This document shows positions 4,922 to 24,076 of a DNA stretch of 64,000 nucleotides, one piece after another (the stretch's first letter is position 1; every line of letters begins with the position of its first letter). A model generated the notes under the pieces. That model was not told the origin of the DNA and did not search any database. It worked only from the letters and a program-made list of their open reading frames with translations. The position numbers and the translations under genes are program-made. The stretch is from positions 233,711 through 297,710 of IMG/VR virus record IMGVR_UViG_3300035698_029839; one strand, given 5' to 3'.

Positions 4922-5329
4922 GAATTATAGATAGCTACGGAGAATATGATGTACAAATCATTATATAAAGATGAAAAAATGCAACAACTAGTTGACCAAC
5001 TTATGAACGGAGAAATCACCGAAAAATAATATGAAAAAGAGATAAAACTGCTTAAACAATAATGATGGCAATTTCAGTAGTATAAAGTGAAAAAGAATGG
5101 CAATTCACAATCAAAAATAGAAAAATATCACTTTTTACCACCTTACTCTTGACAATGACAAAATATAGGCTATAATGAGAGTATAACTTTTTAAAATATT
5201 TTAAAATATTTATCTGAATAAAGGCTATTATGATGTTCTATGTAAGTGTTGACGGAAAAAGATAAGGGATATGGTTGAGAGCATTAACTACTCATAAAAA
5301 ATGTTGGATAAAAACAAAAGGATGTAAAA

Positions 5330-10267: not shown

Positions 10268-10310
10268 TTCCAGACAAGTGGTTTTTTAATAGTATCATAT
10301 GGAGGTAATT

Positions 10311-11273
10311 ATGAATAATAATGTTAAAAAGTTATCAGATATTGAAGCAAGTCCTGTTATTAGGAACAGAACATGGTTTAATGATCTTGATCAAGTATAT
10401 GGAACGAGTATTTCTCCTACTCATAATCTTGGTATGCCTAAAGGTAAGATTAGCTTATGGGCAGGAGAAAGAGGAGTTGGTAAGAGTAGATTGTGTATTG
10501 AGGTAGTCAAGAAATTTACTACTAACTATTCTGATGGTAAGGTTTTATATTTTCTAACAGAAGCTCCTTTGAATGATTTTGCTCAATGGGCAGTTGATGA
10601 TAATTGGCATTATAAGCATATGGTAGAATGTAGTGGTGCTAATAAGATAGATGAGATGGTTGAAATTATTTATCAAGTTAGGCCAAAACTTATATTTATT
10701 GATAGTGTTAACCAGATTGAAGATTTTACAGGCACTGCCAAATCTGCTAAAAGGCTTATAGATGGTGTTGAAGATATAAAAGGTTTAAGAGAAGCTACTT
10801 ATGATGTAGGTGCTCACTTAATCTTATTAGGTCAGATGAATGGAGATGGAAAGACTATTAAAGGTGGTTCAAGTTTGCCTCACTTGGTAGATATAGAGTT
10901 ATATGTAGTTATTGAAGATAAGAATAAGGGTTTATTTAGAATAGAAGTAGGTACAAAGCATAGATATGGCAGAACAGATAGAACTGCTAGGTTCCTGCAT
11001 ACTGACTATGGAGTAAATGAGGCATCTGAATCAGTTACTAATGATTTACCTGATGGTTATAGAAGAGTTTCAGGTTTGAGTCAGAGTGGTTTTATTACTG
11101 TTGGTCCTGATGGCTTGGCAGATACCAATGATCCTGAGTTTTTAGAGCATTTGGAGGCACATAGGTTAATTAACAATATGAACTCTGAATCTGTCTATGA
11201 TCCTGGTGATCCTGGTTTAGGATTACATATTAAGAACAGGGTTCCTACTTTATGGGAAAGATTTATTGGATAA
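10311..11273 (+). CDS. RadA/Sms-like RecA-superfamily ATPase
   Basis: Walker A GERGVGKS, Walker B IFIDS, GGSSLPHLVD and KHRYG matching RadA LEHxVD and KNRFG; GGAGG RBS favours ATG 10311. Confidence 0.8.
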   Translation: MNNNVKKLSDIEASPVIRNRTWFNDLDQVYGTSISPTHNLGMPKGKISLWAGERGVGKSRLCIEVVKKFTTNYSDGKVLYFLTEAPLNDFAQWAVDDNWHYKHMVECSGANKIDEMVEIIYQVRPKLIFIDSVNQIEDFTGTAKSAKRLIDGVEDIKGLREATYDVGAHLILLGQMNGDGKTIKGGSSLPHLVDIELYVVIEDKNKGLFRIEVGTKHRYGRTDRTARFLHTDYGVNEASESVTNDLPDGYRRVSGLSQSGFITVGPDGLADTNDPEFLEHLEAHRLINNMNSESVYDPGDPGLGLHIKNRVPTLWERFIG

Positions 11274-11543
11274 AGTTCTTGTAAAGTGAAAGAGCTTTGG
11301 TTATAATTTTTTTAAAGAAGAGCCCATTCTTATGTAAAATGAGTAAGGATAGGTACTTGAGTCTTTTTTCTATTAACAAATTTAACAATTCGTTAATATA
11401 TTCTTTAAAAAAATTAAAAAGTAGAGATAAAGTTATTGAAAAGTGAAAGTGAGTTAGTATAATAAGAGATATTGTATCACCCCTCCTCCTTTGGGGAGAA
11501 TGATATTTTTTATTGTTTTCCCCAAAATTTTTAAATTAGGGGG

Positions 11544-11572
11544 TTGACAAGTGAAAGTAGATGTGATAGTAT
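11544..11572 (+). promoter_or_regulatory. sigma70-type promoter with AAGTGAAAG spacer box
   Basis: TTGACA-N17-TAGTAT with TG extended -10. Confidence 0.75.
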
Positions 11573-11578
11573 AGAGAT

Positions 11579-11762
11579 TCGCGATAGGAGGTTCTTAATT
11601 GAACTGGCTTATCTATGCGGGTCGATGATTCGTGAATAAGGGGAGAATAGGGATATTAATTTATCTCTATTACTCCTAACTATAAATGGGACTTAGACGG
11701 TTCCCATCGTTACTATGGTTATAGTAGTGAGAGGTACTGGGTTACTTCTCGCTACTATTTTT
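11579..11762 (+). ncRNA. unknown structured small RNA
   Basis: strong promoter, several hairpins, long terminal hairpin plus T run, no long ORF. Confidence 0.5.
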
Positions 11763-11864
11763 AAAAAAGATTAAAGAAAAAAAAAGGATTATCCGATAGT
11801 AGTTAATAAATAGAAAGTAATTAGTTTTTGTTCGAGAAAATACAAATTAAGGAATAAACAAGAG

Positions 11865-12017
11865 ATGACTATCTCAACCAGAAATCCTGTTGTCGCAAAT
11901 TTACGAAGAAGAAACCATACCTTGGCAGTGCAGCCGATAAGCTGTGCCTTTATTGGTCAAAGGTATGCGGATATGCTCTGGTCCAATTGTCCTGAAAAGA
12001 AACATGGATCGGGGTAG
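11865..12017 (+). CDS. putative attenuator leader peptide, 50 aa
   Basis: MTISTRNPVVANLRRRNHTLAVQPISCAFIGQRYADMLWSNCPEKKHGSG*; AAGGA RBS; stop lies inside the antiterminator arm. Confidence 0.7.
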   Translation: MTISTRNPVVANLRRRNHTLAVQPISCAFIGQRYADMLWSNCPEKKHGSG

Positions 12018-12078
12018 TCGCTTTTGAATTTATAGTTCCTCGTTCAAAGGCGATTACCAAAGGTAATCGTCTTTTTTT
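12013..12078 (+). terminator. mutually exclusive antiterminator/terminator (attenuator)
   Basis: 12013-12028 pairs with 12043-12058 (16 bp); alternatively 12046-12058 pairs with 12062-12074, with T run to 12078. Confidence 0.85.
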
Positions 12079-12236
12079 ATTAGAAAAAAGTAAAGAGAAA
12101 AATGGAAACAATAGAAATGTTTAGAGAAATAGCGAAAGTTGATAAGATTCAGGAAAATCATAATGATTTTTATGAAATGGCTGAGAAGTATGGATTTTGT
12201 ACTCCTTGGAGTAATTGTGAAGAGGGTAATGAGTAT

Positions 12237-12274
12237 AGTTCTTTAAAAACGTAATGAATATAGTTCTTTAAAAA
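12237..12274 (+). promoter_or_regulatory. tandem boxA-like antitermination sites
   Basis: AGTTCTTTAAAAA twice; similar at 13263 and 16084. Confidence 0.55.
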
Positions 12275-12298
12275 GTAAATAGTATTATCACTTAAAAT

Positions 12299-12371
12299 TG
12301 TCCTTTAGTGTAATGGCTTAGCACGATTGCCTTTGACGCAATCAGTCGAAGTTCGAATCTTCGGAGGACAG
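12299..12371 (+). tRNA. tRNA-Gln(TTG)
   Basis: cloverleaf; ATTGC-CT TTG AC-GCAAT. Confidence 0.9.
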
Positions 12372-12468
12372 CTATGAATAGGATAATGTATAAAAATAAA
12401 AAAAGGAGTATTCCCCTATTATCAGAATATATATAATATAAAGTACATTTTAATAATAGGAGATTGTA

Positions 12469-13182
12469 ATGAAACAAAAAACAGGGCCTAAAAGGACTAG
12501 TATTATATGGCAGATGTCAAAAAAAGATTTTACAGAAAATGTGAAAAAAAGTTCTACTTTTAAAGAGATATTAAAATATTTTGGATTAGAAAATAAAGGT
12601 AGCAATTACAAAACATTAAAAAAAAGATTAGAGGAAGAAAATATAAATTATTCTCATATTCCTACAGGAGTAGGATGTAACAAAGGAATGAAAATAAATA
12701 GAAAAGCTATCTCATTAGAAAAAGTAATGATAGAAAATTCTACTTATTGCAGGGGGACTCTTAAAAAAAGATTATTAAAGAATGGTATGTTAGAAAATAA
12801 ATGTATGATCTGTGATCAACTACCTGAACATAATGGGATTAAATTAGTAATGGTTTTAGATCATATTAATGGAACTCCTAATGATCATAGATTAGAAAAT
12901 TTAAGATTACTTTGTCCTAATTGCAATAGCCAACAATCAACTTTTGCTGGAAAAAGGCATAAAAAACATTATTATTGTGAAAAATGTGGGAATAAAAGAA
13001 AAAATAAACAAAGTAAATATTGTTTTAGTTGTTCTGTTAAATTAAATGGGCAAAATAGAAGAAAAGTTAAAAATAGACCATCTAAAGAAAAATTATTAAA
13101 AGAAATAAAAGAAACTAATTATTGTGCTGTTGGTAGAAAATATGATGTAAGTGATAGTGCTATTAGAAAATGGTTGAAATGA
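12469..13182 (+). CDS. HNH homing endonuclease
   Basis: LDHING..DHRLENLRLLCPNCNS; paralog of 15078. Confidence 0.9.
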   Translation: MKQKTGPKRTSIIWQMSKKDFTENVKKSSTFKEILKYFGLENKGSNYKTLKKRLEEENINYSHIPTGVGCNKGMKINRKAISLEKVMIENSTYCRGTLKKRLLKNGMLENKCMICDQLPEHNGIKLVMVLDHINGTPNDHRLENLRLLCPNCNSQQSTFAGKRHKKHYYCEKCGNKRKNKQSKYCFSCSVKLNGQNRRKVKNRPSKEKLLKEIKETNYCAVGRKYDVSDSAIRKWLK

Positions 13183-13185
13183 TAT

Positions 13186-13259
13186 TCCCATGTAACTCAA
13201 TTAGGCAGAGTGGCACGCTGTTAACGTGTTGGTTGTAGGTTCGATTCCTACCGTGGGAG
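13186..13259 (+). tRNA. tRNA-Asn(GTT)
   Basis: cloverleaf. Confidence 0.9.
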
Positions 13260-13371
13260 TTCGATTCTTTGAAAAGTAAATAGGGGTTCCAAAAGGAACA
13301 CACATTGTGTTAAGTTTTAATTACTAACACATGGAGAGGTATAGCACTGAGTGGTATCTCTCCATGTTTTC

Positions 13372-13445
13372 TGACCTATAGCTTATGTGGGAAAAGCATT
13401 CGTCTTATAAGCGAAAGAGTCCAGGTTCGAATCCTGGTGGGTCAA
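13372..13445 (+). tRNA. tRNA-Ile(TAT)
   Basis: TTCGT-CT TAT AA-GCGAA. Confidence 0.85.
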
Positions 13446-13448
13446 TAT

Positions 13449-13521
13449 AGGCATAAAGCTCAGCAGGCAGAGCATCGTGCTGATATCACGAAGGCCGTTG
13501 GTTCGAATCCAGCTATGCCTA
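13449..13521 (+). tRNA. tRNA-Ile(GAT)
   Basis: cloverleaf. Confidence 0.9.
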
Positions 13522-13589
13522 TTAGAAAGAGGAATTCTTCTTTTTTTCCCGAAATAATATAGAATAAAGGACAAAAGGGAGAATTCATC

Positions 13590-13808
13590 ATGAAAGAAGT
13601 CTTGATAGAATTAGTAAAAAGGGTAAGTAGGAAAGCAGTTATATTAGCAATAGCTATGGTGTTGGTATATATGGTTATTATAACACCGAATGCCGTAAAT
13701 GCAGTGATAGCTATAGGGGTGATTTCTGGTTTATCAATAGTAGGAGCAGGACTTCAATTTTATTTAGATCTTAAAAAGATCAAAGATGACGAAACAGATA
13801 AAATTTAA
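13590..13808 (+). CDS. small two-TM membrane protein (holin-like topology)
   Basis: two TM helices, charged tail, AGGA-N17-GAAA promoter. Confidence 0.6.
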   Translation: MKEVLIELVKRVSRKAVILAIAMVLVYMVIITPNAVNAVIAIGVISGLSIVGAGLQFYLDLKKIKDDETDKI

Positions 13809-13947
13809 GCAGGTTGAATGTGAGTAAGTTATCGCTTATGGAGCCTGATGTGGATGGTTCGATTCCTCCTCTCTCGATTACAAATTGTTCGAGAGATAGC
13901 TTAACGGTAGAGCGCAGTAAAAACACTTATTCCTCCCACATATCTGC
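13809..13947 (+). ncRNA. Y-RNA(YrlA)-like RNA 1 with permuted tRNA module
   Basis: GCAGGTTGA..GTTATCG / CATATCTGC terminal stem; T arm, loop-closed acceptor TCTCTCGA/TCGAGAGA, then D arm. Confidence 0.75.
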
Positions 13948-13960
13948 TTTTTTAAACTTA

Positions 13961-14052
13961 GAAATATGGTGATAGGGCCTACAAAGCTTGGGTCAGCCAA
14001 CTACCCTAGGGACGCAAGTCATTGGTCTGGGGTCGAGTCCCAGTCATATTTC
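13961..14052 (+). ncRNA. non-canonical tRNA-like RNA
   Basis: 9-bp acceptor GAAATATGG/TCATATTTC, T arm CTGGG-GTCGAGT-CCCAG, atypical D and anticodon arms. Confidence 0.5.
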
Positions 14053-14060
14053 TCTTTTTT

Positions 14061-14134
14061 ACCCGCTTCGCTTAGTTGGCTAAAGCATCTGTCCTACAAA
14101 CAGAAGATCGTAGGTTCGAGTCCTATCGCGGGTA
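14061..14134 (+). tRNA. tRNA-Val(TAC)
   Basis: cloverleaf, C33. Confidence 0.85.
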
Positions 14135-14136
14135 TT

Positions 14137-14260
14137 ACACAGGTTGATCGCATGAAGGTTATCGGATAAAACATTTTTTCTTCAAACAAAAAATGCAAGT
14201 AGGGTTCAAACCCTTACAACCCAGAAATGGGAAAATTCTTCTGCACTAACATATCTGTGT
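14137..14260 (+). ncRNA. Y-RNA-like RNA 2
   Basis: ACACAGGTTGA..GTTATCG / CATATCTGTGT; T-arm-like hairpin and short closed stem. Confidence 0.7.
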
Positions 14261-14263
14261 TTT

Positions 14264-14334
14264 CCCCTATTGGTGTAATGGGAGCACGTGGCACTGTCGA
14301 TGCCAGGGCAGCAGATCGAAACTGCTATGGGGGG
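14264..14334 (+). tRNA. tRNA-Asp(GTC)
   Basis: cloverleaf, T loop ATCGAAA. Confidence 0.8.
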
Positions 14335-14339
14335 TTTTT

Positions 14340-14421
14340 GAGAGTATTGAGCAATTGGTGGCTTATCTGGCTGTAACCCAGATTCTGAAAAGACTTGTAG
14401 GTTCGAATCCTTCTGCTCTCA
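14340..14421 (+). tRNA. tRNA-Tyr(GTA)
   Basis: cloverleaf with variable arm. Confidence 0.85.
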
Positions 14422-14546
14422 TTTGGAGTTACTATGAATAAGAATTCTAGAAACTTATTTTAGTACTTTAGTCGTCTAAGGGCAAGGATACCTGTGCAAG
14501 CAGGAGATATGGTGTTCGAGTCGTCATCTAAATATTACTCCTAAAT

Positions 14547-14637
14547 GGTAAGTTGGCAGAGTCTGGCTTATTGCACTTGGTTGCTAACCAAGAGGGCCTT
14601 GAATAAGGTCCCATAGGTTCAAATCCTATACTTACCG
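14547..14637 (+). tRNA. tRNA-Ser(GCT)
   Basis: long variable arm, G73. Confidence 0.9.
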
Positions 14638-14719
14638 TTAGTGTGGAAAGCCGCACACGTAGTTACTTCCTTTTCGAAGGAGCAGACTAGGCTTGACGAA
14701 GGGGAAGAGACTCCTAACT

Positions 14720-14806
14720 GGATGAGCAAGCAGATTGGTGACTGCACTGGTTTTGAAAACCAACGAGCCTTTAAAAGCCTTGAGAGTTCGATTCCCTCCT
14801 CATCCG
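14720..14806 (+). tRNA. tRNA-Ser(TGA)
   Basis: long variable arm, G73. Confidence 0.85.
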
Positions 14807-14812
14807 CTTATT

Positions 14813-14885
14813 AGCGATATGGTGAAAATGGTAATCATAGATCCTTCATAAGGATCAGTTCCTGGTTCGATTCCAGATATCGCTA
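14813..14885 (+). tRNA. tRNA with CAT anticodon (elongator Met likely)
   Basis: GATCC-TT CAT AA-GGATC. Confidence 0.8.
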
Positions 14886-14893
14886 TTTATCAA

Positions 14894-14969
14894 CTGAACG
14901 TGGGGAAGTTTGGCCTAACCCGCCTGGTCTGGAGCCAGGAGAACGCTGGTTCAAATCCAGCCGTTCAGA
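14894..14969 (+). tRNA. tRNA-Pro(TGG) variant 1
   Basis: loop TC TGG AG. Confidence 0.8.
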
Positions 14970-15077
14970 TTTTGTAACACCGAATAGAAAATAAGCAGTC
15001 AAGACATATGTTTTATTAAAGGAATCCTGTCTTTTATGTCGAATATATAGATATAAGTTATTTAGATAGGAGATAAA

Positions 15078-15767
15078 ATGAGAAAAAGAACAAGTGTTGT
15101 GTGGAAGATATCAATAGAAGAATTAAAAAAGATAGTAAAAAAGAATGATAGTTTTGCAAAAATTTTAAAACATTTTGGGATGGCAATAGCAAGTGGAAAC
15201 TATAAAACATTAAAAAAAAGATTAAATTATGAAAATATAAGTTATTCTCATATATCTCAAGGGCTTAATAATAATAAAGGAAGAAAATTTCCAGAAAGAG
15301 CTATTCCCTTAAAAGAAGTAATGGTAAAAAACTCTACCTATTGTAGGGGAACTCTTAAAAAAAGATTATTAAAAAAGGGTTTATTAGAAAATAAATGTAA
15401 TATTTGTGGACAAATTTCTGAACATAATAATATTAAGTTAATAATGGTTTTAGATCATATAAATGGAGTTTCTAATGATCATCGCGTAGAGAATTTAAGA
15501 TTGCTTTGTCCTAATTGTAATAGCCAACAAAAAACATTTGCGGGAAGAAATTCTGTAAGAAAAAAATATAACTGTATTACTTGTGGTAAAAAAATTACAA
15601 AACATTCAAAATTGTGTAAAAGTTGCAGTGCTAGATTGCAAAAAAGAAAAGTTAAAAATAGACCTTCAGTAGAACAATTATTAAAAGAAATAAAAGAAAC
15701 TAATTATTGTGTTGTTGGTAGGAAATATGAAGTAAGTGATAATGCAGTAAGAAAATGGTTAAAATAA
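15078..15767 (+). CDS. HNH homing endonuclease
   Basis: LDHING..DHRVENLRLLCPNCNS. Confidence 0.9.
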   Translation: MRKRTSVVWKISIEELKKIVKKNDSFAKILKHFGMAIASGNYKTLKKRLNYENISYSHISQGLNNNKGRKFPERAIPLKEVMVKNSTYCRGTLKKRLLKKGLLENKCNICGQISEHNNIKLIMVLDHINGVSNDHRVENLRLLCPNCNSQQKTFAGRNSVRKKYNCITCGKKITKHSKLCKSCSARLQKRKVKNRPSVEQLLKEIKETNYCVVGRKYEVSDNAVRKWLK

Positions 15768-15769
15768 AA

Positions 15770-15841
15770 GGCCCATTCTTCTAGTGGCTAGGATATCAGG
15801 GTTTCATCCTGAAAACAGCGGTCCGACTCCGCTATGGGCTA
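15770..15841 (+). tRNA. tRNA-Glu(TTC)
   Basis: cloverleaf. Confidence 0.85.
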
Positions 15842-15890
15842 TTTAATCAAGGCAGAAACTGAGGGTTCGAGTCCCTTCCAGAGTATTCCT

Positions 15891-15962
15891 GCTCTTCTGG
15901 TGTAACGGTTAGCATCCGTGATTCTCAGTCACGAGATAGGGGTCCGACTCCCCTGAAGAGTA
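15891..15962 (+). tRNA. tRNA-Glu(CTC)
   Basis: cloverleaf. Confidence 0.85.
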
Positions 15963-16030
15963 TTTTTCCTCTTATAAGTCCTTGTCTTTTATGGATTTAA
16001 AAAAATATTAAAAAAATTGGAAAAAAGTTA

Positions 16031-16096
16031 TTGAAAAGTGAAAGAAAATCCGATATAGTAATATCATCATAACGAAAGTTATGACTTCTTTTACAA
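16031..16096 (+). promoter_or_regulatory. promoter plus boxB/boxA-like leader for the ncRNA operon
   Basis: TTGAAA-N17-TATAGT; TCATAAC-GAAA-GTTATGA hairpin then ACTTCTTTTACAA. Confidence 0.6.
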
Positions 16097-16115
16097 GTTA
16101 ATAGAGAGAAAAAAG

Positions 16116-16186
16116 AAACGGGTTGAAGTCTAAAAGTTATCGATCCTTGAAAATCAAACACACTTTTTGACACACCATATCCGTTT
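16116..16186 (+). ncRNA. Y-RNA-like RNA 3 (minimal)
   Basis: ACGGGTTGA..GTTATCG / CATATCCGT. Confidence 0.65.
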
Positions 16187-16201
16187 TTTCTAAAATATGC
16201 A

Positions 16202-16456
16202 TGTGGGTTGATTGATATTGGTTATCGATAATTACTGTGAAAAAGTGCAAGTAAGGATCAAAAAAGAGATTTAGGTAAAGTTAGATTGAGATCACGCCAA
16301 TCAATAAATCTAATGGGAAGACTGAAGATCTTTAAGAGAACCTAGGTTGAAACATACTAAAGGCTTTGTACTGTAAATTTCCCAAAACTTTGTTTAGTCC
16401 TTAGATATCCATGAGATATAAAAAAGGACATCTCCAATTTCTCCAACATATCCACA
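16202..16456 (+). ncRNA. Y-RNA-like RNA 4 with about 200-nt insert
   Basis: TGTGGGTTGA..GTTATCG / CATATCCACA. Confidence 0.65.
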
Positions 16457-16465
16457 GGCGTTTAT

Positions 16466-16537
16466 CTGAGGGTCGTCTAATCAGGATACCTCCTGTTAGG
16501 GGAGGAGATGTAGGTGTGACTCCTACTCCTTAGACCA
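16466..16537 (+). ncRNA. non-canonical tRNA-like RNA A, CCA-encoded
   Basis: cloverleaf, D loop lacks GG, T loop TGTGACT, anticodon loop TGTTAGG. Confidence 0.7.
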
Positions 16538-16540
16538 TTT

Positions 16541-16632
16541 TGCTCGGTAGTTTAAATATAAAACAGTTGCTCTGTTAATCATTTATGATTGCTTGCAACA
16601 GATGGTAGGAGTGATGCCTACCCTGAACACCA
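16541..16632 (+). ncRNA. non-canonical tRNA-like RNA B, extended anticodon arm, CCA-encoded
   Basis: GTTGC/GCAAC stem with distal hairpin; GGTAGG/CCTACC T stem. Confidence 0.65.
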
Positions 16633-16639
16633 AAATTAT

Positions 16640-16709
16640 ATTAGAGTAGTCTAATCAAGATACCCCCGTTGAGGGGGAGATGTAGGTGTGACTCCTACCT
16701 CTAATGCCA
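16640..16709 (+). ncRNA. non-canonical tRNA-like RNA C, paralog of A
   Basis: ATTAGAG/CTCTAAT-G-CCA; T arm identical to A; 5-nt anticodon loop. Confidence 0.7.
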
Positions 16710-16715
16710 ATATAT

Positions 16716-16895
16716 GTTAGGGTCTGCTCGAAAGAATTTATTCAGAGATGGGCTGTGAGCTATAAGTTTTGTTAAATGAGTTGGATGACTTGTTTAACGA
16801 AATGGGTTCGCAAAGTCAAAGAGGAAGTGTCTTACACATCCAAAGGTGAGCATGGATCAGAGACTTCGGAGGTTTGAATCCTCCCCCCAACACCA
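16716..16895 (+). ncRNA. 180-nt RNA with tRNA-like acceptor, T arm and CCA
   Basis: GTTAGGG/CCCCAAC-A-CCA, GGAGG-TTTGAAT-CCTCC, internal long hairpin. Confidence 0.6.
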
Positions 16896-16911
16896 ATTTT
16901 CATTTTTTTAC

Positions 16912-16998
16912 TGTTAGGTAGTTTAAGTAAAAAACAGTTATTAAGGCACACCCCTGTTTTGATAGCAGATGATAGGTGAGATACCTATCCCTTACACA
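16912..16998 (+). ncRNA. non-canonical tRNA-like RNA E, paralog of B
   Basis: 10-bp anticodon arm, GATAGG/CCTATC T stem. Confidence 0.6.
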
Positions 16999-17104
16999 TT
17001 GGGTAGCTTATGGGTAAAGTTGGTTATTGAGTCGATTAAAGGTTTATAGTGCTTTTAGTCAATGCCTTAATAACAGAAGGATGGGTCCGATTCCCTCCCC
17101 CGAT
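16998..17104 (+). ncRNA. non-canonical tRNA-like RNA F, very long anticodon arm
   Basis: ATTGGG/CCCGAT, D arm, GTTATTGAG/CTTAATAAC, T loop TCCGATT. Confidence 0.55.
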
Positions 17105-17135
17105 ATTTTTCTCTCTATCAGTTTAAAAAAATAAT

Positions 17136-17209
17136 TGCGGAGTAGAGCAGTCTGGCAGCTTGTCAGCCTCATAAGCTGAAGGTCGGAGGTTCAAATCCTT
17201 CCTCCGCTA
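17136..17209 (+). tRNA. tRNA-Met(CAT), initiator-like
   Basis: 1:72 mismatch, fMet-like D arm; lacks the three G-C anticodon-stem pairs. Confidence 0.8.
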
Positions 17210-17211
17210 TT

Positions 17212-17349
17212 GAAGTAAGTGGTTGTTGATATTCGTCAGATAAGGCAAATTCTAATTTTTCTCATGTCAAAAATAAGAGGCCTTTGTTATAATTCAAACA
17301 TGATTGGATTATGATGATTCGGAATATTGACTGGCCAGCCACTTACTTC
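17212..17349 (+). ncRNA. unknown rod-shaped RNA
   Basis: 14-bp terminal stem GAAGTAAGTGGTTG/CAGCCACTTACTTC plus inner stems. Confidence 0.5.
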
Positions 17350-17379
17350 TTCATTTTTCTTACACCGAATCATTATTTC

Positions 17380-17454
17380 CTGAACGTGGGAAAGCTTGGC
17401 CTAATCCGCGAGCTTTGGAAGCTCGAGACGCCAGTTCAAATCTGGCCGTTCTGA
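17380..17454 (+). tRNA. tRNA-Pro(TGG) variant 2
   Basis: loop TT TGG AA. Confidence 0.85.
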
Positions 17455-17457
17455 TAA

Positions 17458-17531
17458 CTCTCAGTGGGAAAGCTTGGTATTCCGTCTGGTTTGGGACCAG
17501 AAGATCAGAGGTTCGAATCCTCTCTGAGAGA
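17458..17531 (+). tRNA. tRNA-Pro(TGG) variant 3
   Basis: loop TT TGG GA. Confidence 0.85.
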
Positions 17532-17540
17532 TTAACCAAA

Positions 17541-17667
17541 GTGGGTTGATAGATAGTAGGTTATCGCTTATAACGAAGTGGTTGTGAGTTCGAGTCTCAC
17601 CGCGGAGGCAACTCTGTGTAGCTCAATGGCAGAGCACTAAAAATTCTATTGTCGCTAACACATCCAC
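17541..17667 (+). ncRNA. Y-RNA(YrlA)-like RNA 5 with permuted tRNA module
   Basis: T arm GTGAG-TTCGAGT-CTCAC, acceptor CGCGGAG-GCAA-CTCTGTG, D arm GCTC-AATGGCA-GAGC. Confidence 0.8.
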
Positions 17668-17700
17668 GGTTTTTTTAATAGTATAGCACTGAATAGTGTT

Positions 17701-17771
17701 GGGGGTATCGTCCAACGGGAAGACATCTGGTTTGCAACCAGAAAATAAGAGTTCGATTCTCTTTACCTCCA
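17701..17771 (+). tRNA. tRNA-Ala(TGC)
   Basis: G3:U70. Confidence 0.9.
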
Positions 17772-17778
17772 TTCTCTT

Positions 17779-17852
17779 GGGGACGCATGTGCCAAGGGTG
17801 GCGAGAGACCTTTGCAAGGTATCTGTGGTCAGTTCGATTCTGATCGTCTCCA
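17779..17852 (+). tRNA. tRNA-Ala(TGC), second copy
   Basis: G3:U70. Confidence 0.8.
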
Positions 17853-17854
17853 TT

Positions 17855-17963
17855 AAACAGGTTGATTGGTTAAAAGTTATCGATAAGTTCGACTCTTATT
17901 CTCCCCTTCTTTCATGGGGAGAAATGGCCTGGGGCCACCTTTTCTCCTACCACACATCTGTTT
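17855..17963 (+). ncRNA. Y-RNA-like RNA 6
   Basis: AAACAGGTTGA..GTTATCG / CACATCTGTTT; T arm then closed acceptor TCTCCCC/GGGGAGA. Confidence 0.7.
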
Positions 17964-18041
17964 TTTATAAAAAAAGGAAATTCTAAGTATATGTCGAAAT
18001 AGTAAGTAGTAAGCTATTTAACAATTACTTAGGATTTCAAT

Positions 18042-18449
18042 ATGAACTATAAGACAGGAAAATATGCAAAGAAAAAATGTATTGGATGTGGATTAAAAAC
18101 ATTAAACATAAAATTTTGTAGTAATAAATGCCAGCAATTATATTTTTGGGAAAAAAGAAAAAAAGAGATAAAAAAAACAGGAGAGATCCCAGAAAGAAGA
18201 GTTGGTATACGATATCTTAAAGAGGTCAGGGGAGATAAATGTGAGATATGTGATCTTAAAGAATGGAATGGAAAAGATATTACTATGATCATGGATCATA
18301 TCGATGGAGACTCATTAAATAATAAAGATCTAAATCTTAGATTGATTTGTCCTAACTGTGACTCTCAGTTATCAACCTATAAAAATAGGAATAAAGGTAA
18401 TGGTAGACATTCAAGAAGAGTAAGATATGCAGAAGGTAAAAGTTATTAA
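18042..18449 (+). CDS. HNH endonuclease
   Basis: MDHIDG..NN...NLRLICPNCDS. Confidence 0.85.
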   Translation: MNYKTGKYAKKKCIGCGLKTLNIKFCSNKCQQLYFWEKRKKEIKKTGEIPERRVGIRYLKEVRGDKCEICDLKEWNGKDITMIMDHIDGDSLNNKDLNLRLICPNCDSQLSTYKNRNKGNGRHSRRVRYAEGKSY

Positions 18450-18450
18450 T

Positions 18451-18523
18451 GCTGGTGTAGCTCAATTGGCAGAGCGCCTCATTTGTAATGAGGATGTTGT
18501 GGGTTCGACTCCTATCACCAGCT
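18451..18523 (+). tRNA. tRNA-Thr(TGT)
   Basis: cloverleaf. Confidence 0.9.
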
Positions 18524-18528
18524 TTAAA

Positions 18529-18600
18529 GGTGCGATAGCTGAGGCGGTTTAGCGCGAGACTGAAAATCTTGAGACGGAGGTTCGAGTCCTCTTCGTACCA
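18529..18600 (+). tRNA. tRNA-Phe(GAA)
   Basis: cloverleaf. Confidence 0.9.
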
Positions 18601-18614
18601 CTTTGTAGCACTGA

Positions 18615-18687
18615 GGGCCTGTAGCTCAATTGGCAGAGCGCCAAGCTCATAACTTGTGGATTGTAGGTTCGAGTCCTTCCTGGCCCA
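18615..18687 (+). tRNA. tRNA with CAT anticodon, probably Ile2 (lysidine)
   Basis: GGGCCTGTAGCTCA start typical of Ile2. Confidence 0.75.
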
Positions 18688-18749
18688 TTAATAATTTTTT
18701 TTAGGAGAAAGATCATGAAACGTAAGAAAGAAAAATCTGGTAAAATGTA

Positions 18750-18824
18750 GGGTGTGAAGCTTATTCTGGTAAAGCACGCGACTTTTAATCGCGAGTCTTG
18801 GGAGTTCGAATCTCCCTACACCCA
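18750..18824 (+). tRNA. tRNA-Lys(TTT)
   Basis: cloverleaf. Confidence 0.9.
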
Positions 18825-18829
18825 TTAGT

Positions 18830-18903
18830 GCCTTTGAAGCTTATTTGGCAAAGCACCTGGTTCTTACCCAGGAGTCTTGAGCGTTCGAATCGCTCCAGAG
18901 GCA
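18830..18903 (+). tRNA. tRNA-Lys(CTT)
   Basis: cloverleaf. Confidence 0.85.
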
Positions 18904-18909
18904 TTTCCT

Positions 18910-18982
18910 GTCAGAGGTGATGTAATTGGCAGCATATCAGACTGTGAATCTGAGTGAGCGAGTTCAAATCTCGTCCTTTGAC
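18910..18982 (+). tRNA. tRNA-His(GTG)
   Basis: G-1:C73. Confidence 0.9.
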
Positions 18983-19068
18983 CTTTTAAAAGGATTTGAA
19001 AATAAATAAAGGATTCAGATCCCTATTTTAGAATATAAGGTATAAACTATTTTTTTTGGAGAATAGAA

Positions 19069-19398
19069 ATGCCTTATAAAAATAAAGAAGATCAGTTAGA
19101 ATGTCAGAGAAGGTACTATCGTAATCATAGAAAAACTATGATCGAAAGAACCAATAAAAGAGCCAAAGAAATACGAAAATGGTGGAAAGAGTATAAAAAA
19201 ACACAAAAATGTGAAAAATGTGGAGAAAATCACCCAGCTTGTATTTGTTTTCATCATAGAGATCCAGAAGAAAAAGATATAGATCTATCCACTGCCGTTA
19301 CTCATAATCATTGGGGAGAAAAGAGAATAAAAAAAGAGTTATTAAAATGTGATGTTATTTGTTCTAATTGTCATCTTAAAATTCATTGGAATGATTAA
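19069..19398 (+). CDS. HNH endonuclease
   Basis: CxxC, FHHRDP, CDVICSNCH. Confidence 0.85.
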   Translation: MPYKNKEDQLECQRRYYRNHRKTMIERTNKRAKEIRKWWKEYKKTQKCEKCGENHPACICFHHRDPEEKDIDLSTAVTHNHWGEKRIKKELLKCDVICSNCHLKIHWND

Positions 19399-19404
19399 TT
19401 TTTC

Positions 19405-19475
19405 GCTCGGGTGGTCTAATGGAATGATGACAGATTGCAAATCTGTAGGCGAGAGTTCGATTCTCTCCCTGAGCT
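19405..19475 (+). tRNA. tRNA-Cys(GCA)
   Basis: U73. Confidence 0.9.
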
Positions 19476-19900
19476 TTTCCAGACAAGTGGTTTTTTATTA
19501 TTATTAAGTATAAATATTAATTTTTGGTAAAAAGGATTAAAAGATGGTAAAATATGTATTAACTGAAGAACAAGAAAAGAAGTTAAACGATGCAGATCTT
19601 GGACAATGGAAGAAACTAAATAATAAGGGTCAACAAGCTATTAAACAGAGAATGGCGATTGCTGACAGAATTGGACTAAAATTATCTGAAATAAAAAGAA
19701 TAGATTTATGAAGAAATCAGATGAAGACAGTTGTAGTGGTTTTAAAAGAGGATGGACTTCTGATCATGAAGAGTGCATAACATGTAAGAAGAATAGTCCT
19801 GCCAGATATAAAAAGTGCATGCAAGCAGTTAAAAAGTCGTTAAAAGAGAACTTTAGCACCGATGAAGAGATAGAGAAGTGGAAAAAAAAGAAAGTGAGAA

Positions 19901-20164
19901 ATGAAGATGAAAAGCTATAAATCGATACCTGTCGAAGTAGAAGCAATTCAATTTTTCGATACTAAAGAAAGTTTTGATGAAACTAAAGAGATTTTTGGAG
20001 AAAGATTATCTTCTAGTCTCCGAAATTTTCCTAGAGCTTTTTTTAGAGTAGAAAATGGGAAAACTGTCCCTTTATATAATAATTCATGGATCGTGAAAAA
20101 AGATAATAAATTAGAGATTTTGGATGATGAAACATTTAAAAAAACATATGAAGAGAAAGGGTAA
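19901..20164 (+). CDS. hypothetical phage protein
   Basis: YK..PVEVEAIQF...FKKTYE motif. Confidence 0.7.
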   Translation: MKMKSYKSIPVEVEAIQFFDTKESFDETKEIFGERLSSSLRNFPRAFFRVENGKTVPLYNNSWIVKKDNKLEILDDETFKKTYEEKG

Positions 20165-20556
20165 AAAATGGTATTTTTTAAAAGGTATAAAATAAATGGG
20201 ATGTTATTGTTTTGGAACATTTGGTTATGGGCTATTCTTTTCATAACAGGATGTAGCACTGTCAAAACTCCTCCTTGGAGTGAGAATGAAGTTTCAAGAA
20301 TGTCTGAAGTAGGACAAAATAAAACAGTTCCTATAGTTTTAATAAAGGTAGATTGATGGATATATCTAAAATATTTTGTTTTTTAGGACTTCATGACTGG
20401 TATTATGGAAATTTCCAGACAGGAGAGATGTCAAAATGGACAGGAGATCATGTTGGAGTTAGAGGAAGATCCTGTGTAAATTGTAATAAAAACCAAATAA
20501 AGAAAAAGAAGAAATATGTAACTGTTGATAGTTTTGAAAAACAATCAAATGAATAA

Positions 20557-20588
20557 GCGGGTGTGGTATAATGGCAAAATGCAAGGTT
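20557..20588 (+). pseudogene. 5' half of a tRNA (Gly-like), truncated at the anticodon loop
   Basis: GCGGGTG-TG-GTAT-AATGGCA-AAAT-G-CAAGG-TT ends at the HNH stop codon. Confidence 0.65.
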
Positions 20589-21250
20589 TATATATTTAAA
20601 AATCCATGATCTAAATCCCAGTGATGATTGGGACAAAGAAACATTAAATTTTTAATATCATTAACAACTTTTAATTTTGTGTTTTTGTTAAATTGATTAA
20701 TAGCTTTAATATGACACAAATCTAATTTGTTATTATATGAACAAAGTGGACATTTATTTGGTTTAAGATTATAAAATTTTGCTATTTGATGAGCATGATT
20801 TCTGATGGATTGATATTTGTGTCTTGCATAGGTAGATGTAAAATCTTTAATATATTTCTCTCCATATTGTTCTATTCTGTTAAGAGTAAGACATTTTTGA
20901 CAATAATGGGTTTTTGATTGAGTTAGATTTTGACATCTTAAACATTTTCTTTTAGGGCGTTTTGGAAAAAGACTATTATTTGTTTTTGCAGCACAGGATC
21001 TAGAACAGTATTTAGGGTTTTTAGTTTTTGTTCCACAAGTAAAACAATTAATTATAGGTCTATTAGGAGCTTTTATTTTTATTATTTCTCCAAAACATTC
21101 TTTTAAAGCATTATTCCATGATCCGAATCTTTTGCTTACAGTCCATTTATCAAAAGATCCATATTTATTATAATCATTTAATGATGGAATTTTTTTTATT
21201 TTAATTTTAACTCTTTTAAGGTCTTCTATAAGTTTATTAGTTGTTATCAT
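20588..21250 (-). CDS. HNH homing endonuclease
   Basis: KRFGSWNNAL homing-endonuclease-associated repeat, LCHIK..NLMFLCPNHH. Confidence 0.85.
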   Translation of the reverse strand: MITTNKLIEDLKRVKIKIKKIPSLNDYNKYGSFDKWTVSKRFGSWNNALKECFGEIIKIKAPNRPIINCFTCGTKTKNPKYCSRSCAAKTNNSLFPKRPKRKCLRCQNLTQSKTHYCQKCLTLNRIEQYGEKYIKDFTSTYARHKYQSIRNHAHQIAKFYNLKPNKCPLCSYNNKLDLCHIKAINQFNKNTKLKVVNDIKNLMFLCPNHHWDLDHGFLNI

Positions 21251-21273
21251 TATTACTCCTATAGTTTATTTAT

Positions 21274-21346
21274 GGGAATGAAACTCAATTGGACGAGTCT
21301 CACACTTCCACTGTGGGTGTTGCGAGTTCGAATCTCGTCATTCCCT
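21274..21346 (+). tRNA. tRNA-Gly(TCC)
   Basis: divergent cloverleaf, U73. Confidence 0.8.
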
Positions 21347-21438
21347 TTACTTATATTTCGGCATAAATGATTTGAATTCCTTTATTTTTATGGAAAAATA
21401 ATAAATTCATTTTCGAAAATGGATAAAATAAATTTAAT

Positions 21439-21510
21439 GCGAAATTGGTGTTAATGATAGCACATATGCTTGCCGAGCATAAGGTAAGAGTTTGAATCTC
21501 TTATTTCGCT
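21439..21510 (+). tRNA. tRNA-Gly(GCC)
   Basis: cloverleaf, U73. Confidence 0.85.
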
Positions 21511-21515
21511 TTCAA

Positions 21516-21588
21516 GCCCCTGTACCAGAATTGGCATATGGACTGCGTTTAGACCGCAGGGATGGAGGTTCGAGTCCTCTCGGGGGCA
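21516..21588 (+). tRNA. tRNA-Leu(TAG), short variable arm
   Basis: CTGCG-TT TAG AC-CGCAG. Confidence 0.8.
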
Positions 21589-21649
21589 TTATTTCCAGAC
21601 AAGTGGTTTTTTAATATTATATGATGTTAACTATGTAAAAGAGGTAATC

Positions 21650-22030
21650 ATGAAACGTGTACTAACAATGGATGATATTAGAAAAGGGATGTATGTTACT
21701 GTTCTTCAAGGTAAGATAGAGCAGAAAGTAATCCCTACTCTTAATGGTCCTAGAATCGTTGATAAAGAAAATGATTATTGGAACGGAAAAATTTTAGAAG
21801 TTACTGCTGTTGATATGCCTTATATTGTAGTTAAACTCCATACAAACATGAGTTGTTCTACATATTCTCTTGATGTTAGGATTGTCCAGTTTATGCTTCT
21901 TTCTCCAGAATATATTAAAGCTTGTTGTCCTGATATAAAGATTTCTAAAGATCTTTTTTGGAAGGATATTAAAGATGATTCTATAAAGAATGTTAATACT
22001 ACTATTGAAGAGATTTTTAAGGATCTCTAA
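21650..22030 (+). CDS. hypothetical protein
   Basis: repeat promoter, GAGG RBS. Confidence 0.75.
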   Translation: MKRVLTMDDIRKGMYVTVLQGKIEQKVIPTLNGPRIVDKENDYWNGKILEVTAVDMPYIVVKLHTNMSCSTYSLDVRIVQFMLLSPEYIKACCPDIKISKDLFWKDIKDDSIKNVNTTIEEIFKDL

Positions 22031-22209
22031 CACTGATTTTATGGATATAGAATTACAACAATTAAAAGATGAATTAAGCGTGGTCTCTATGAGATTAGTT
22101 TATGTAACTGAAGATATTTCTATTAAAATGGCTGAAGGGGACAAATTAAATCAAAGAAAAATTGATTTAGTTGAAAAAATAATGAAATTAGAAGATTAAC
22201 AAAGATAAA

Positions 22210-22283
22210 GCACCTGTAGTCTAATTGGAGAGGCACTGCGCTTCTAACGCAGATACATGCGGGTTCGAGTCCTGCCAGGTGTA
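22210..22283 (+). tRNA. tRNA-Arg(TCT)
   Basis: cloverleaf. Confidence 0.9.
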
Positions 22284-22288
22284 ATCAA

Positions 22289-22363
22289 GCTCCCGAAGCT
22301 TAAATGGATAAGCATCTCTCTCCTAAAGAGAAGTTTTTGTAGGTTCGAGTCCTATCGGGAGTA
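22289..22363 (+). tRNA. tRNA-Arg(CCT)
   Basis: cloverleaf. Confidence 0.85.
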
Positions 22364-22368
22364 TTAAA

Positions 22369-22441
22369 GCCCCTATAGTATAATCGAATAGAACATCGGC
22401 CTACGAAGCCGAAGATGGGAGTTTGAGTCTTCCTAGGGGCA
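22369..22441 (+). tRNA. tRNA-Arg(ACG)
   Basis: cloverleaf. Confidence 0.85.
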
Positions 22442-23074
22442 TTATATTAGTTTTTTAATAATGTTTTTTATATCATTAAAAGCTTGTTTTAGTATTTTGT
22501 CATTAGATACTAAATCTGGAATAACTATTAAGTTGATGTTTTTGTTAGTTGCTATTTTAGTTTTTTTAGAGTCTATGTTTTGTATTTTATTTAATTTAGT
22601 TTGACCATAGATAGGTTTGAAATGAACTATACCATTCCATTCAATAGCCAATTTAAGACTAGGGATAGCAACATCTGTTTCTAATCCATTTAACATAATT
22701 TTATCGTTAGCTAAAATAGTTAAATTAGGAAATTCTTTTACAAGTAAATTGTAAAATTTAGTTTCTATTTTAGATCTACGAGATTTCCTTTTTAATTTGT
22801 TATTATAAGTGGCAGCGCAAGATTTAGAACAAAAAGATTTACCTGATTTAGATTTTTTTATTTCTGATGGAAGAGTTGTTATTTTTTTATTACAAGATCC
22901 ACAAAAGGTTTTTACGAGGTTTATTTGTTTTTTATGATTATTAAAGCATTTTCTATTGCAAAAAGTGTGTTTATATCTATAACTATATTTTCTTATATTG
23001 CGAGTATGATCAGCTAAAATTCTTTCAAATAATTTTTTACAGTAGTAACATTTTAATTTAATAACTTTTCGCAT
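22442..23074 (-). CDS. Zn-finger plus PD-(D/E)xK-type putative homing endonuclease
   Basis: CxxC/FCxxxC repeats; ETDVAIPSLKLAIEWNG.VH. Confidence 0.8.
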   Translation of the reverse strand: MRKVIKLKCYYCKKLFERILADHTRNIRKYSYRYKHTFCNRKCFNNHKKQINLVKTFCGSCNKKITTLPSEIKKSKSGKSFCSKSCAATYNNKLKRKSRRSKIETKFYNLLVKEFPNLTILANDKIMLNGLETDVAIPSLKLAIEWNGIVHFKPIYGQTKLNKIQNIDSKKTKIATNKNINLIVIPDLVSNDKILKQAFNDIKNIIKKLI

Positions 23075-23173
23075 AGTTTATATCCTGAATTTATTTTTCT
23101 TATTATTTATATATTCTATTAAAAAATCTTAAATCCTTTTTATTTTTTTTCGAGTCCTGAGTGGGACGTTAAT

Positions 23174-23245
23174 AGGTCGGTGGTGTAATGGCTAGCATAT
23201 TGGTCTCCAAAACCGAAGATTAGGGTTCGACTCCCTACCTTCCTG
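23174..23245 (+). tRNA. tRNA-Trp(CCA)
   Basis: G73. Confidence 0.85.
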
Positions 23246-23371
23246 TTTATTCCAGACAACTGGTTTTTCGTAATGATAGAATAAGAGTAGTTAAAAGAGG
23301 TAGTTTGACATTTCTTTCACTTTTTTATTTTTCTCTTGAAAGTGAAAGGGTGCTGCCATATAATAGATGAT

Positions 23372-23512
23372 GAGCAGTGGTAGAAATTGGTATGGCTACA
23401 ATAACATTAGGTAGTTGTATATATCTAGTGGTTGTGTAAGCATTTATATTGTGAACCCCCTTTTTTAAGGTCAGCGGGTCCAAACCGAAACAGGTTTAAG
23501 CCCTGTCTGCTC
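23372..23512 (+). ncRNA. tRNA-like RNA with large central insertion
   Basis: GAGCAG/CTGCTC, Leu-like D loop, ACAGG/CCTGT T stem; own TTGAAA-N17-TATAAT promoter. Confidence 0.45.
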
Positions 23513-23681
23513 TTTATAAGTTAAATAAGAAATGAGATAGTAGTTTGGTAAGCTAAAAATTAATGACACGGCTGAGGCAGGGCGACCCCCTACTACGTAG
23601 AGATCGACACTTACTTAGATTTATTTTTACCAGAATAAATTGAAAAAGTTAGTTTTTATCTATCTTATTTCTTTTTTATAT

Positions 23682-23754
23682 GCCCAGGTAGGCCAACGGC
23701 AGAGTCAACGGTCTTAAAAGCCGTAAAGTGGAGGTTCAAATCCTCTCCTGGGCA
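23682..23754 (+). tRNA. tRNA-Leu(TAA), short variable arm
   Basis: cloverleaf. Confidence 0.85.
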
Positions 23755-23784
23755 TTACGGTTTTTTAAATGTAAGGAGTAAGAA

Positions 23785-23997
23785 ATGTTAGTATTGAGTA
23801 GACAAAAAAATGAATCGATTATGATTAATGATGGAGATAGACTTATAGAGATCTGTATCGTTGATGTGCGTGGTGATAAGGTTCGACTTGGAATAACGGC
23901 TCCAAAAGATATCCCTGTTCATAGAAAAGAAATTTATGAAGCGATTCAAAGAGAAAAAGAAGAAGAACAGAATAAGGATATTTCAGATCCTCTTTAA
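23785..23997 (+). CDS. csrA: carbon storage regulator CsrA
   Basis: [34 protein letters not shown]. Confidence 0.95.
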
Positions 23998-24003
23998 AGA
24001 TAA

Positions 24004-24076
24004 GCCCAGGTAGCCCAACGGCAGAGGCGGTAGACCCAAAATCTATTTAGTGAGAGTTCGAATCTCTCTCTGGGTA
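24004..24076 (+). tRNA. tRNA-Leu(CAA), short variable arm
   Basis: cloverleaf, C33. Confidence 0.8.

Follow-up and report, generated by a model that had tools for sequence, protein, structure and literature searches.

A family of huge phages places a short leader ORF, kept by selection to contain every one of the 20 amino acids and inferred to be translated, inside an RNA on/off switch located directly upstream of their tRNA gene array, an arrangement that looks like one sensor for shortage of any charged tRNA. The element was first seen in a 64-kb stretch (64,000 nt, positions 233,711 to 297,710; hereafter the window) of the IMG/VR contig IMGVR_UViG_3300035698_029839, a 297.7-kb uncultured phage with 32% G+C, and it recurs in about 50 related uncultured huge-phage sequences. 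Wherever downstream DNA is available in these relatives, the same tRNA array (Gln-Asn-Ile-Val-Asp...) follows. The element has the geometry of a four-region leader-peptide attenuator, but its sensing scope and its target would be new, and its polarity (stalling gives read-through) is inferred rather than shown.

Results

A leader ORF with all 20 amino acids overlaps competing hairpins upstream of a tRNA array

We first re-examined the features proposed in a preliminary description made from the sequence alone, and found that its observation is real. The leader ORF has 50 sense codons, 40 distinct codons and all 20 amino acids, and its TAG stop codon lies in the 5' arm of a 17-bp hairpin (z = -4.9) that shares a strand with a 13-bp intrinsic terminator stem followed by T7 (Table 1). 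A second 50-codon ORF (ORF2), two exact tandem copies of TAGTTCTTTAAAAA and the tRNA array lie downstream. The only numerical slip concerned the tRNA count, given as 34, whereas ARAGORN finds 33, covering all 20 amino acids.

Table 1. Features of the leader, the switch and their surroundings, in window coordinates
Feature	Coordinates	Strand	Description	Supporting observations
RecA-like ATPase gene	10299-11273		Upstream gene used to find related loci	
A-rich tract and promoter-like region	11769-11830	+	UP-like tract followed by a region that would drive the leader transcript	About 85-97% nucleotide identity across 13 loci; single copy in the window; promoter function inferred
Shine-Dalgarno-like motif	11849-11853	+	AAGGA, 11 nt before the ATG	AGGRA-type motif kept at a similar distance in orthologs
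Region 1	11859-11875	+	Last 6 nt of the 5' UTR, start codon and codons 2-4; pairs with region 2 (anti-antiterminator and lock on the translation start)	
Leader ORF	11865-12017	+	50 codons plus TAG (12015-12017)	Frame, start and stop conserved
Hairpin inside the ORF	11928-11947	+	Codons 22-28, followed by a T-rich stretch; candidate RNA polymerase pause or synchronisation hairpin (pause function inferred)	89.3% of cells paired; 7 of 8 pairs, 39 cells, changed on both sides; covariation score 0.71 against 0.29 in shuffles (0 of 500 as high); 19 orthologs
Region 2	12011-12029	+	Last two Gly/Ser codons, stop codon and next 12 nt; pairs with region 1 or region 3	Invariant TCGCTTTT core
Region 3	12042-12058	+	3' arm of the antiterminator; 12046-12058 is also the 5' strand of the terminator stem	
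Region 4	12062-12078	+	3' strand of the terminator stem (12062-12074), overlapping the T7 run (12072-12078)	
Start/stop helix (1:2)	11859-11875 with 12011-12026	+	14-bp helix in RNAalifold	98.9% of cells paired (36-49% in slid controls); 2 pairs changed on both sides; 19 orthologs
Antiterminator (2:3)	12013-12029 with 12042-12058	+	17 bp	93.8% of cells paired; 4 pairs changed on both sides; 21 orthologs
Terminator (3:4)	12046-12058 with 12062-12074	+	13 bp plus T7	95.9% of cells paired; 26 cells changed on both sides; 0 of 500 shuffles as high; 21 orthologs
ORF2	12102-12254		Second 50-codon ORF	All 20 amino acids in the window, in 2 of 12 family members
Tandem boxA-like sites	12236-12274	+	Copies of TAGTTCTTTAAAAA at 12236 and 12261, just before tRNA-Gln	Belonging to the system uncertain
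tRNA array	12299-24076	+	33 tRNA genes covering all 20 amino acids, interrupted by a few ORFs	Same gene order in all related loci with downstream sequence

To determine if these properties exceed chance within this one sequence, we compared the leader with other 50-codon windows, since unremarkable codon diversity against background had been named in advance as grounds for discarding the idea. Only 2 of 17,210 stop-free 50-codon windows in the 64 kb reach 40 or more distinct codons, and 1.8% have all 20 amino acids. Independent draws from the codon usage of this phage gave P(all 20) = 0.04 and P(>=40 codons) < 1e-5. Given the peptide, however, 40 codons exceeds the AT-biased synonymous usage of the genome (P = 0.0009) but not roughly uniform synonymous usage (P = 0.14). 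GC3 is 0.42 in the leader against 0.22 in genes, and the codon diversity and GC-rich codons stressed in the preliminary description are absent in distant members. We therefore treat codon diversity as largely a by-product of amino-acid completeness plus a GC shift that fits the RNA helices inside the ORF, and from one sequence alone the finding would be suggestive and no more.

The leader recurs in related huge phages and its amino-acid completeness is under selection

Conservation of leader and switch in related phages had likewise been put forward as a check. To this end, we used the upstream RecA-like ATPase gene as a handle and fetched 61 loci from viral and metagenome collections (individual related loci are designated by L numbers below). 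Nucleotides 11756-12089 of the window are 70-80% identical in about 25 of these loci, even though their ATPase proteins are only 42-66% identical to that of the window. In alignments (19 orthologs) the ORF keeps its start, stop and frame, every indel inside the ORF is a multiple of three, the first six codons and the 12 nt after the stop are almost invariant at the nucleotide level, and the middle of the peptide drifts. More distant versions exist in L004 (a 548-kb contig), L030, L034 and L045, and a 35-codon form occurs in L058 and L049.

Of 22 distinct leaders read from the fetched loci, 18 have all 20 amino acids, 3 have 19 and 1 has 18. An unbiased profile search of 1.84 billion cluster representatives returned 30 more leaders of 49-53 residues, and of the 27 not already seen, 25 have all 20. 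In total, 43 of 49 distinct leaders are complete, against about 4% expected per sequence by chance. By contrast, only Met1 and one Trp are invariant in 21 aligned leaders, and Cys, His and Tyr sit at different positions in different orthologs, so what is kept is the composition and not the sequence. A neutral simulation on the family's own tree with its per-site rates, starting from a complete ancestor, yielded 2-4 complete tips out of 21 (maximum 17 in 5,000 runs) against 19 observed (P<2e-4). As an internal control we used the neighbouring ORF2 family, which has the same size, comes from the same genomes and carries a conserved FYELAEKYGFCTPW-type motif: the completeness of ORF2 in the window is a coincidence, as only 2 of 12 members are complete. 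Both decoding boxes of Ser, Leu, Arg, Ile and Gly are used in 106 of 115 cases, against about 87 expected, which hints at coverage of tRNA species rather than only of amino acids; since the sequences are related, we regard this as suggestive only. No enrichment or cluster of codons for particular amino acids related to the operon, the feature that gives each classical attenuator its specificity, was found, and about 5 of the amino acids occur only once per leader.

Three mutually exclusive helices are conserved with compensatory changes

We then asked if the RNA structures are conserved as well. The terminator, the antiterminator and a third helix that the preliminary description had missed are each conserved with compensatory changes, and a covarying hairpin lies inside the ORF (Table 1). 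The antiterminator is the RNAalifold consensus of the switch fragment, and in the distant clade GAA:TTC is replaced by AGATA:TATCT. The stop codon lies inside region 2 in all orthologs, including the distant 35-codon clade, where it sits 9 nt deeper in the arm.

The third helix (1:2) is a long-range pairing between the translation start region and region 2. Its duplex energy is -14 to -20 kcal/mol in 20 of 22 orthologs, against -5 to -9 for shuffles, and its clearest covariation links codon 2 to the stop codon, with ACT and TAG in most sequences but ATT and TAA in L034 and L148. The helix explains why synonymous sites of codons 1-4 are frozen, and in L147 region 1 is kept although the start codon has moved just downstream of it.

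Folding with and without the segment that a ribosome would cover had also been suggested beforehand as a check. Untranslated RNA is predicted to adopt 1:2 plus the terminator in the consensus structure, in 17 of 21 orthologs and in the window (P = 0.9), and a ribosome placed at the stop codon gives the terminator in all. With a lone ribosome in mid-ORF, regions 1 and 2 are both free and equilibrium folding predicts the 1:2 helix plus the terminator in most orthologs. In several orthologs (L008, L009, L012 and L020) the terminator wins at equilibrium under every mask tried. The 2:3 against 3:4 balance is too fine and too variable between orthologs for equilibrium folding with ribosome masks to assign the polarity, so the decision must be kinetic. 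The positions of amino acids that occur only once were not decisive for the polarity either: they never fall in the last two codons and rarely in the first ten, concentrating in codons 11 to n-3, but both avoided zones are also constrained by RNA pairing or by conserved sequence.

The switch is directly followed by a syntenic tRNA array

In four relatives the distance from the T-run to tRNA-Gln is only 11 nt (L026), 22 nt (L020), 26 nt (L015) and 30 nt (L008). This leaves no room for a separate promoter, so in those phages the array has to be transcribed through the terminator. In the window, on the other hand, a weak promoter-like site lies between the terminator and tRNA-Gln.

The element matches no Rfam, Pfam or PHROG family

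Rfam searches with permissive thresholds returned no leader, attenuator or T-box family (His_leader, Trp_leader, Leu_leader, Thr_leader and others) at E <= 10 in 11400-12300, the only hits being terminator-like small-RNA models below their thresholds. Pfam and PHROG searches likewise gave nothing for the leader. Searching 50,697 phage records by blastn with the region and by tblastn with the flanking ATPase gave no relative closer than 26% identity, and no cultured phage carrying the element was found. A loose switch pattern returned 80 loci in bacterial and archaeal genomes, but none matched the nhmmer profile of the element, so they are chance hits. Full-text literature searches found no description of such a leader, and the huge-phage survey PMC7162821 does not mention attenuators or leaders.

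Discussion

We favour, with moderate confidence, a ribosome-mediated transcription attenuator that gates the phage tRNA operon and whose leader has been selected to contain every amino acid, so that slow decoding at any kind of codon is registered. Our comparisons show a conserved leader with selection on its completeness, four RNA regions forming three mutually exclusive helices, a stop codon inside region 2 and a position directly upstream of the tRNA operon, whereas translation of the leader is deduced from conservation of frame, start and stop and from the constraint at the amino-acid level, the untranslated and stop-codon states are folding predictions, and the operation of the switch is an inference. 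In this view, untranslated RNA would fold into 1:2 plus 3:4 and terminate. A lead ribosome that keeps pace with RNA polymerase would reach the stop codon and cover region 2, so that 3:4 forms and transcription terminates. If the lead ribosome is delayed at any hungry codon while the start region is still occupied, by that ribosome or by a following one, region 2 would be free to pair with region 3 as it emerges, the terminator could not form, and transcription would run into the tRNA array, whose products relieve the delay. This is the same negative-feedback logic as in the his, trp and pheST leaders, extended to a whole tRNA set: by analogy with the his, trp, thr and pheST leaders, whose codons match what their operons supply, an operon supplying tRNAs for all 20 amino acids would need a leader with all 20.

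The interpretation given in the preliminary description, that a ribosome reaching the stop blocks the antiterminator whereas stalling at any depleted codon allows read-through into the tRNA set, is thus supported in part. Its core idea is strongly supported by the comparative evidence, but with the 1:2 helix the untranslated leader is predicted to terminate rather than read through, and a stalled ribosome in mid-ORF does not by itself guarantee antitermination. Read-through requires that the start region be occupied or that kinetics favour the 2:3 helix. In some leaders, moreover, an amino acid occurs only 2-3 codons before the stop, where a stalled ribosome would already cover part of region 2, although no amino acid that occurs only once falls in the last 2 codons. 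There is no experimental evidence of any kind, as the phages are uncultured, and neither the response of read-through to tRNA charging nor the proposed triggers (anticodon nucleases, starvation), which are inference, were assayed here. The host has not been identified, and hence it is not known if it couples transcription and translation. About as likely as not, in our estimation, is the furthest-reaching form of the model, a virus-encoded, cis-acting universal sensor of charged tRNA in which a single leader peptide, kept by selection to contain all 20 amino acids and apparently both decoding boxes of the six-codon amino acids, lets the translating ribosome report shortage of any tRNA and opens a terminator in front of a complete tRNA operon. 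This would give the phage demand-driven control of its own decoding supply, for instance when host tRNAs decay, are cleaved by anticodon-nuclease defences or do not match the codon usage of the phage.

A real rival, although we consider it unlikely, is the same attenuator with the opposite polarity, a stringent-like checkpoint in which smooth translation of all 50 codons allows read-through (for example because the ribosome has left the stop codon and following ribosomes keep region 1 occupied) and a stall for any amino acid leaves regions 1 and 2 free to pair, so that the terminator forms and tRNA synthesis is shut off during starvation. The equilibrium folds with a lone ribosome in mid-ORF are in its favour, as is the concentration of amino acids that occur only once in codons where a stalled ribosome covers neither region 1 nor region 2, and bacterial stable-RNA synthesis is itself shut down when any amino acid is short. 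However, the placement of the stop codon inside region 2 is only needed if the terminating ribosome is meant to block region 2, and a ribosome coupled to RNA polymerase would still be on the stop codon while regions 3 and 4, 27-60 nt downstream, are being made. In addition, seven or eight amino acids occur first within codons 2-10, where a stall masks region 1 and would give the wrong output, and the feedback would not be closed by the products of the operon.

Less likely still is a sensor of translation initiation or ribosome availability, or a purely translational lock, in which occupancy of the start region (1:2 against 2:3) is what matters, the content of the ORF is secondary and its completeness serves some other purpose. 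Sequestration of the start codon by the best-conserved helix and the retention of region 1 in L147 fit this idea, but it explains neither the selection for all 20 amino acids, nor the conserved ORF length of 48-53 codons, nor the location of the stop codon. We regard as very unlikely that the ORF is an ordinary small phage protein gene with its own terminator, the array being transcribed by leaky read-through or from other promoters and the all-20 composition being incidental. The ORF does have a start, a stop, a Shine-Dalgarno-like motif and a terminator, and part of the peptide (the DMLWS...P segment) is fairly conserved within the main clade. Yet completeness persists across the family while the sequence does not, the non-coding nucleotides after the stop are more conserved than the peptide, synonymous sites of codons 1-6 are frozen by RNA pairing, no Pfam or PHROG match exists and the ORF2 control family does not keep completeness. 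Least probable is an RNA-only element (a small RNA or a protein- or ligand-binding leader) with an accidental reading frame: the whole region is strongly structured (z = -7.5) with four conserved helices, but indels only in multiples of 3, the conserved start and stop and a property visible only at the amino-acid level all require translation, and no Rfam family matches, even with permissive thresholds.

The classical leader-peptide attenuators of amino-acid operons and pheST (trp, his, leu, thr, ilv, pheA) also have a short translated leader, four RNA regions forming 1:2, 2:3 and 3:4, a stop codon placed so that a terminating ribosome covers region 2, untranslated RNA predicted to terminate, and regulated genes that supply what the leader codons demand. 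Here, in place of a run of codons for one amino acid, each of the 20 is represented and kept by selection, the leader is long (35 codons in the distant clade), region 1 is the translation start region and not the stretch holding regulatory codons, the target is a tRNA gene array rather than biosynthetic or synthetase genes, and the carrier is a phage. Multivalent attenuators such as the thr (Thr and Ile) and ilvGMEDA (Ile, Leu, Val) leaders also respond to more than one amino acid, but sense two or three related ones through clustered codons, whereas this leader covers all 20, often as single scattered codons. The nearest functional analogues are leaders that sense general translation stress, toiL upstream of topAI-yjhQ (PMC12121999) and bmrB upstream of bmrCD (PMC4191407), in which ribosome stalling in a short upstream ORF, caused by many different insults, switches downstream genes, in the bmrB case through an intrinsic-terminator attenuator. 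They respond to ribosome-targeting antibiotics at particular positions, their downstream genes are a toxin-antitoxin pair or a transporter, no selection for amino-acid completeness has been described for them, and none controls tRNA genes. Stringent control of stable-RNA synthesis (RelA and ppGpp) similarly couples tRNA synthesis to the charging state of any of the 20 tRNA families as read out on the ribosome, but is trans-acting, protein- and alarmone-based and acts at promoters, while here the sensor would be a cis-acting RNA and peptide and the favoured polarity is the opposite one (more tRNA on stalling). T-box riboswitches are leader RNAs with competing terminator and antiterminator helices that report tRNA charging, but they bind one specific uncharged tRNA directly and need no translation, whereas the ORF properties argue for sensing by the ribosome.

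How phages regulate their large tRNA arrays is essentially unknown, the arrays usually being discussed only in terms of codon usage or escape from host tRNA-targeting defences. Attenuation by leader peptides has always been tied to one to three amino acids, and a leader whose only strongly conserved protein-level property is that it contains every amino acid would be a different design principle, with composition rather than sequence as the selected trait. It would also be the first attenuator known to us that controls tRNA genes, and a compact RelA-independent way to couple stable-RNA synthesis to overall decoding capacity. As the element is short (about 250 nt) and self-contained, the hypothesis is directly testable, and the element could also serve as a generic reporter of decoding stress.

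Additional features flanking the switch

The two boxA-like sites ahead of tRNA-Gln, which the preliminary description had included, may be sites for processive antitermination, for which a conserved boxA consensus (GCTCTTTAACAA or TGTTCTTTGAAAA type) just downstream of the promoter or leader of a stable-RNA operon would be expected. Related TGCTCTTTTT-type motifs follow the terminator in L015, L020, L029 and L058, that is in only 4 other loci out of the 19 examined, and matches at 2 mismatches are no more frequent in the window than chance; the sites are thus not consistently conserved, and these observations do not settle whether they act as boxA elements of the system. An extension of helix 1:2 that pairs the Shine-Dalgarno motif with the conserved TTCCTC loop appears in the minimum-energy fold of the window but not in the RNAalifold consensus. 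The Shine-Dalgarno spacing of 11-13 nt is long, which weighs somewhat against the favoured model, as do the weak promoter hexamers in the window. The conserved A-rich tract and promoter-like region lie 35-95 nt upstream of the ATG, and in relative L008 the hexamers read TTGACG-17-TATAAT.

Features flanking the leader and within the tRNA array

Coordinates of additional features at the locus and in related loci
Feature	Sequence	Position
Sigma-70-like promoter and the hairpins that follow it	window	11544-11762
Conserved core within this region	window	about 11604-11645
Last hairpin of this region, followed by a T-run	window	11722-11757
Loop between regions 2 and 3	window	12030-12041
ORF2	window	12102-12254
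tRNA array	window	12299-24076
HNH endonuclease gene	window	12469-13182
Weak match to YrlA and tmRNA-like fragment	window	17546-17664 and 17779-17855
tRNA-like gene with aberrant anticodon	L003 (relative)	11032-11107
tRNA-like gene with aberrant anticodon	L013 (relative)	5197-5268
Leader with displaced start codon	L147 (divergent relative)	2040-2215

Inspection of the sequences on either side of the leader revealed a sigma-70-like promoter (TTGACA-17-TAGTAT, preceded by TG) that is followed by about 190 nt of very stable hairpins, the last of which precedes a T-run, like a terminator. No match to this region was found in Rfam and its function is unknown, but it could be a small RNA or a further leader element. 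When compared to the related loci L013 and L029, only a 35-42-nt core of this region is 95-97% identical.

We also noted two features bearing on the helix between the start-codon region (region 1) and the stop-codon region (region 2) of the leader. In the divergent relative L147, the leader's start codon lies just downstream of region 1 instead of inside it, while the region 1:2 pairing is kept, showing that the RNA helix is conserved independently of the position of the start codon. Moreover, the sequence TTCCTC(G) in the loop between regions 2 and 3 is conserved in at least 90% of orthologs and is complementary to the leader's AGGAA Shine-Dalgarno motif. While the consensus fold does not include this pairing, the 1:2 helix extends to it in the minimum-energy fold of the window.

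Between the attenuator and tRNA-Gln lies a 50-codon ORF (ORF2) encoding a small protein with a conserved FYE[LM]AEKYGFCTPW-type motif that is present in most related loci; ORF2 has no Pfam or PHROG match. Although ORF2 also contains all 20 amino acids in this window, only 2 of 12 orthologs do, indicating that this is coincidence.

The 33 tRNAs of the array look like a minimal complete decoding set, with one U34 tRNA for each four-codon box plus a few extras, such that the phage could in principle decode nearly all codons by itself. An HNH endonuclease gene sits between tRNA-Gln and tRNA-Asn, two tRNAs that are only 5-30 nt apart in several relatives, and thus looks like a mobile insertion into the array. 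The array also contains a weak match to the Y RNA-like family YrlA (37 bits versus a gathering score of 69) and a tmRNA-like fragment (22 bits), which may be tRNA-like non-coding RNAs. Finally, ARAGORN reported tRNA-like genes with an aberrant two-base 'anticodon' in two relatives, L003 and L013, that may be tRNAs with unusual anticodon loops or decayed copies, and that are located right after tRNA-Val.
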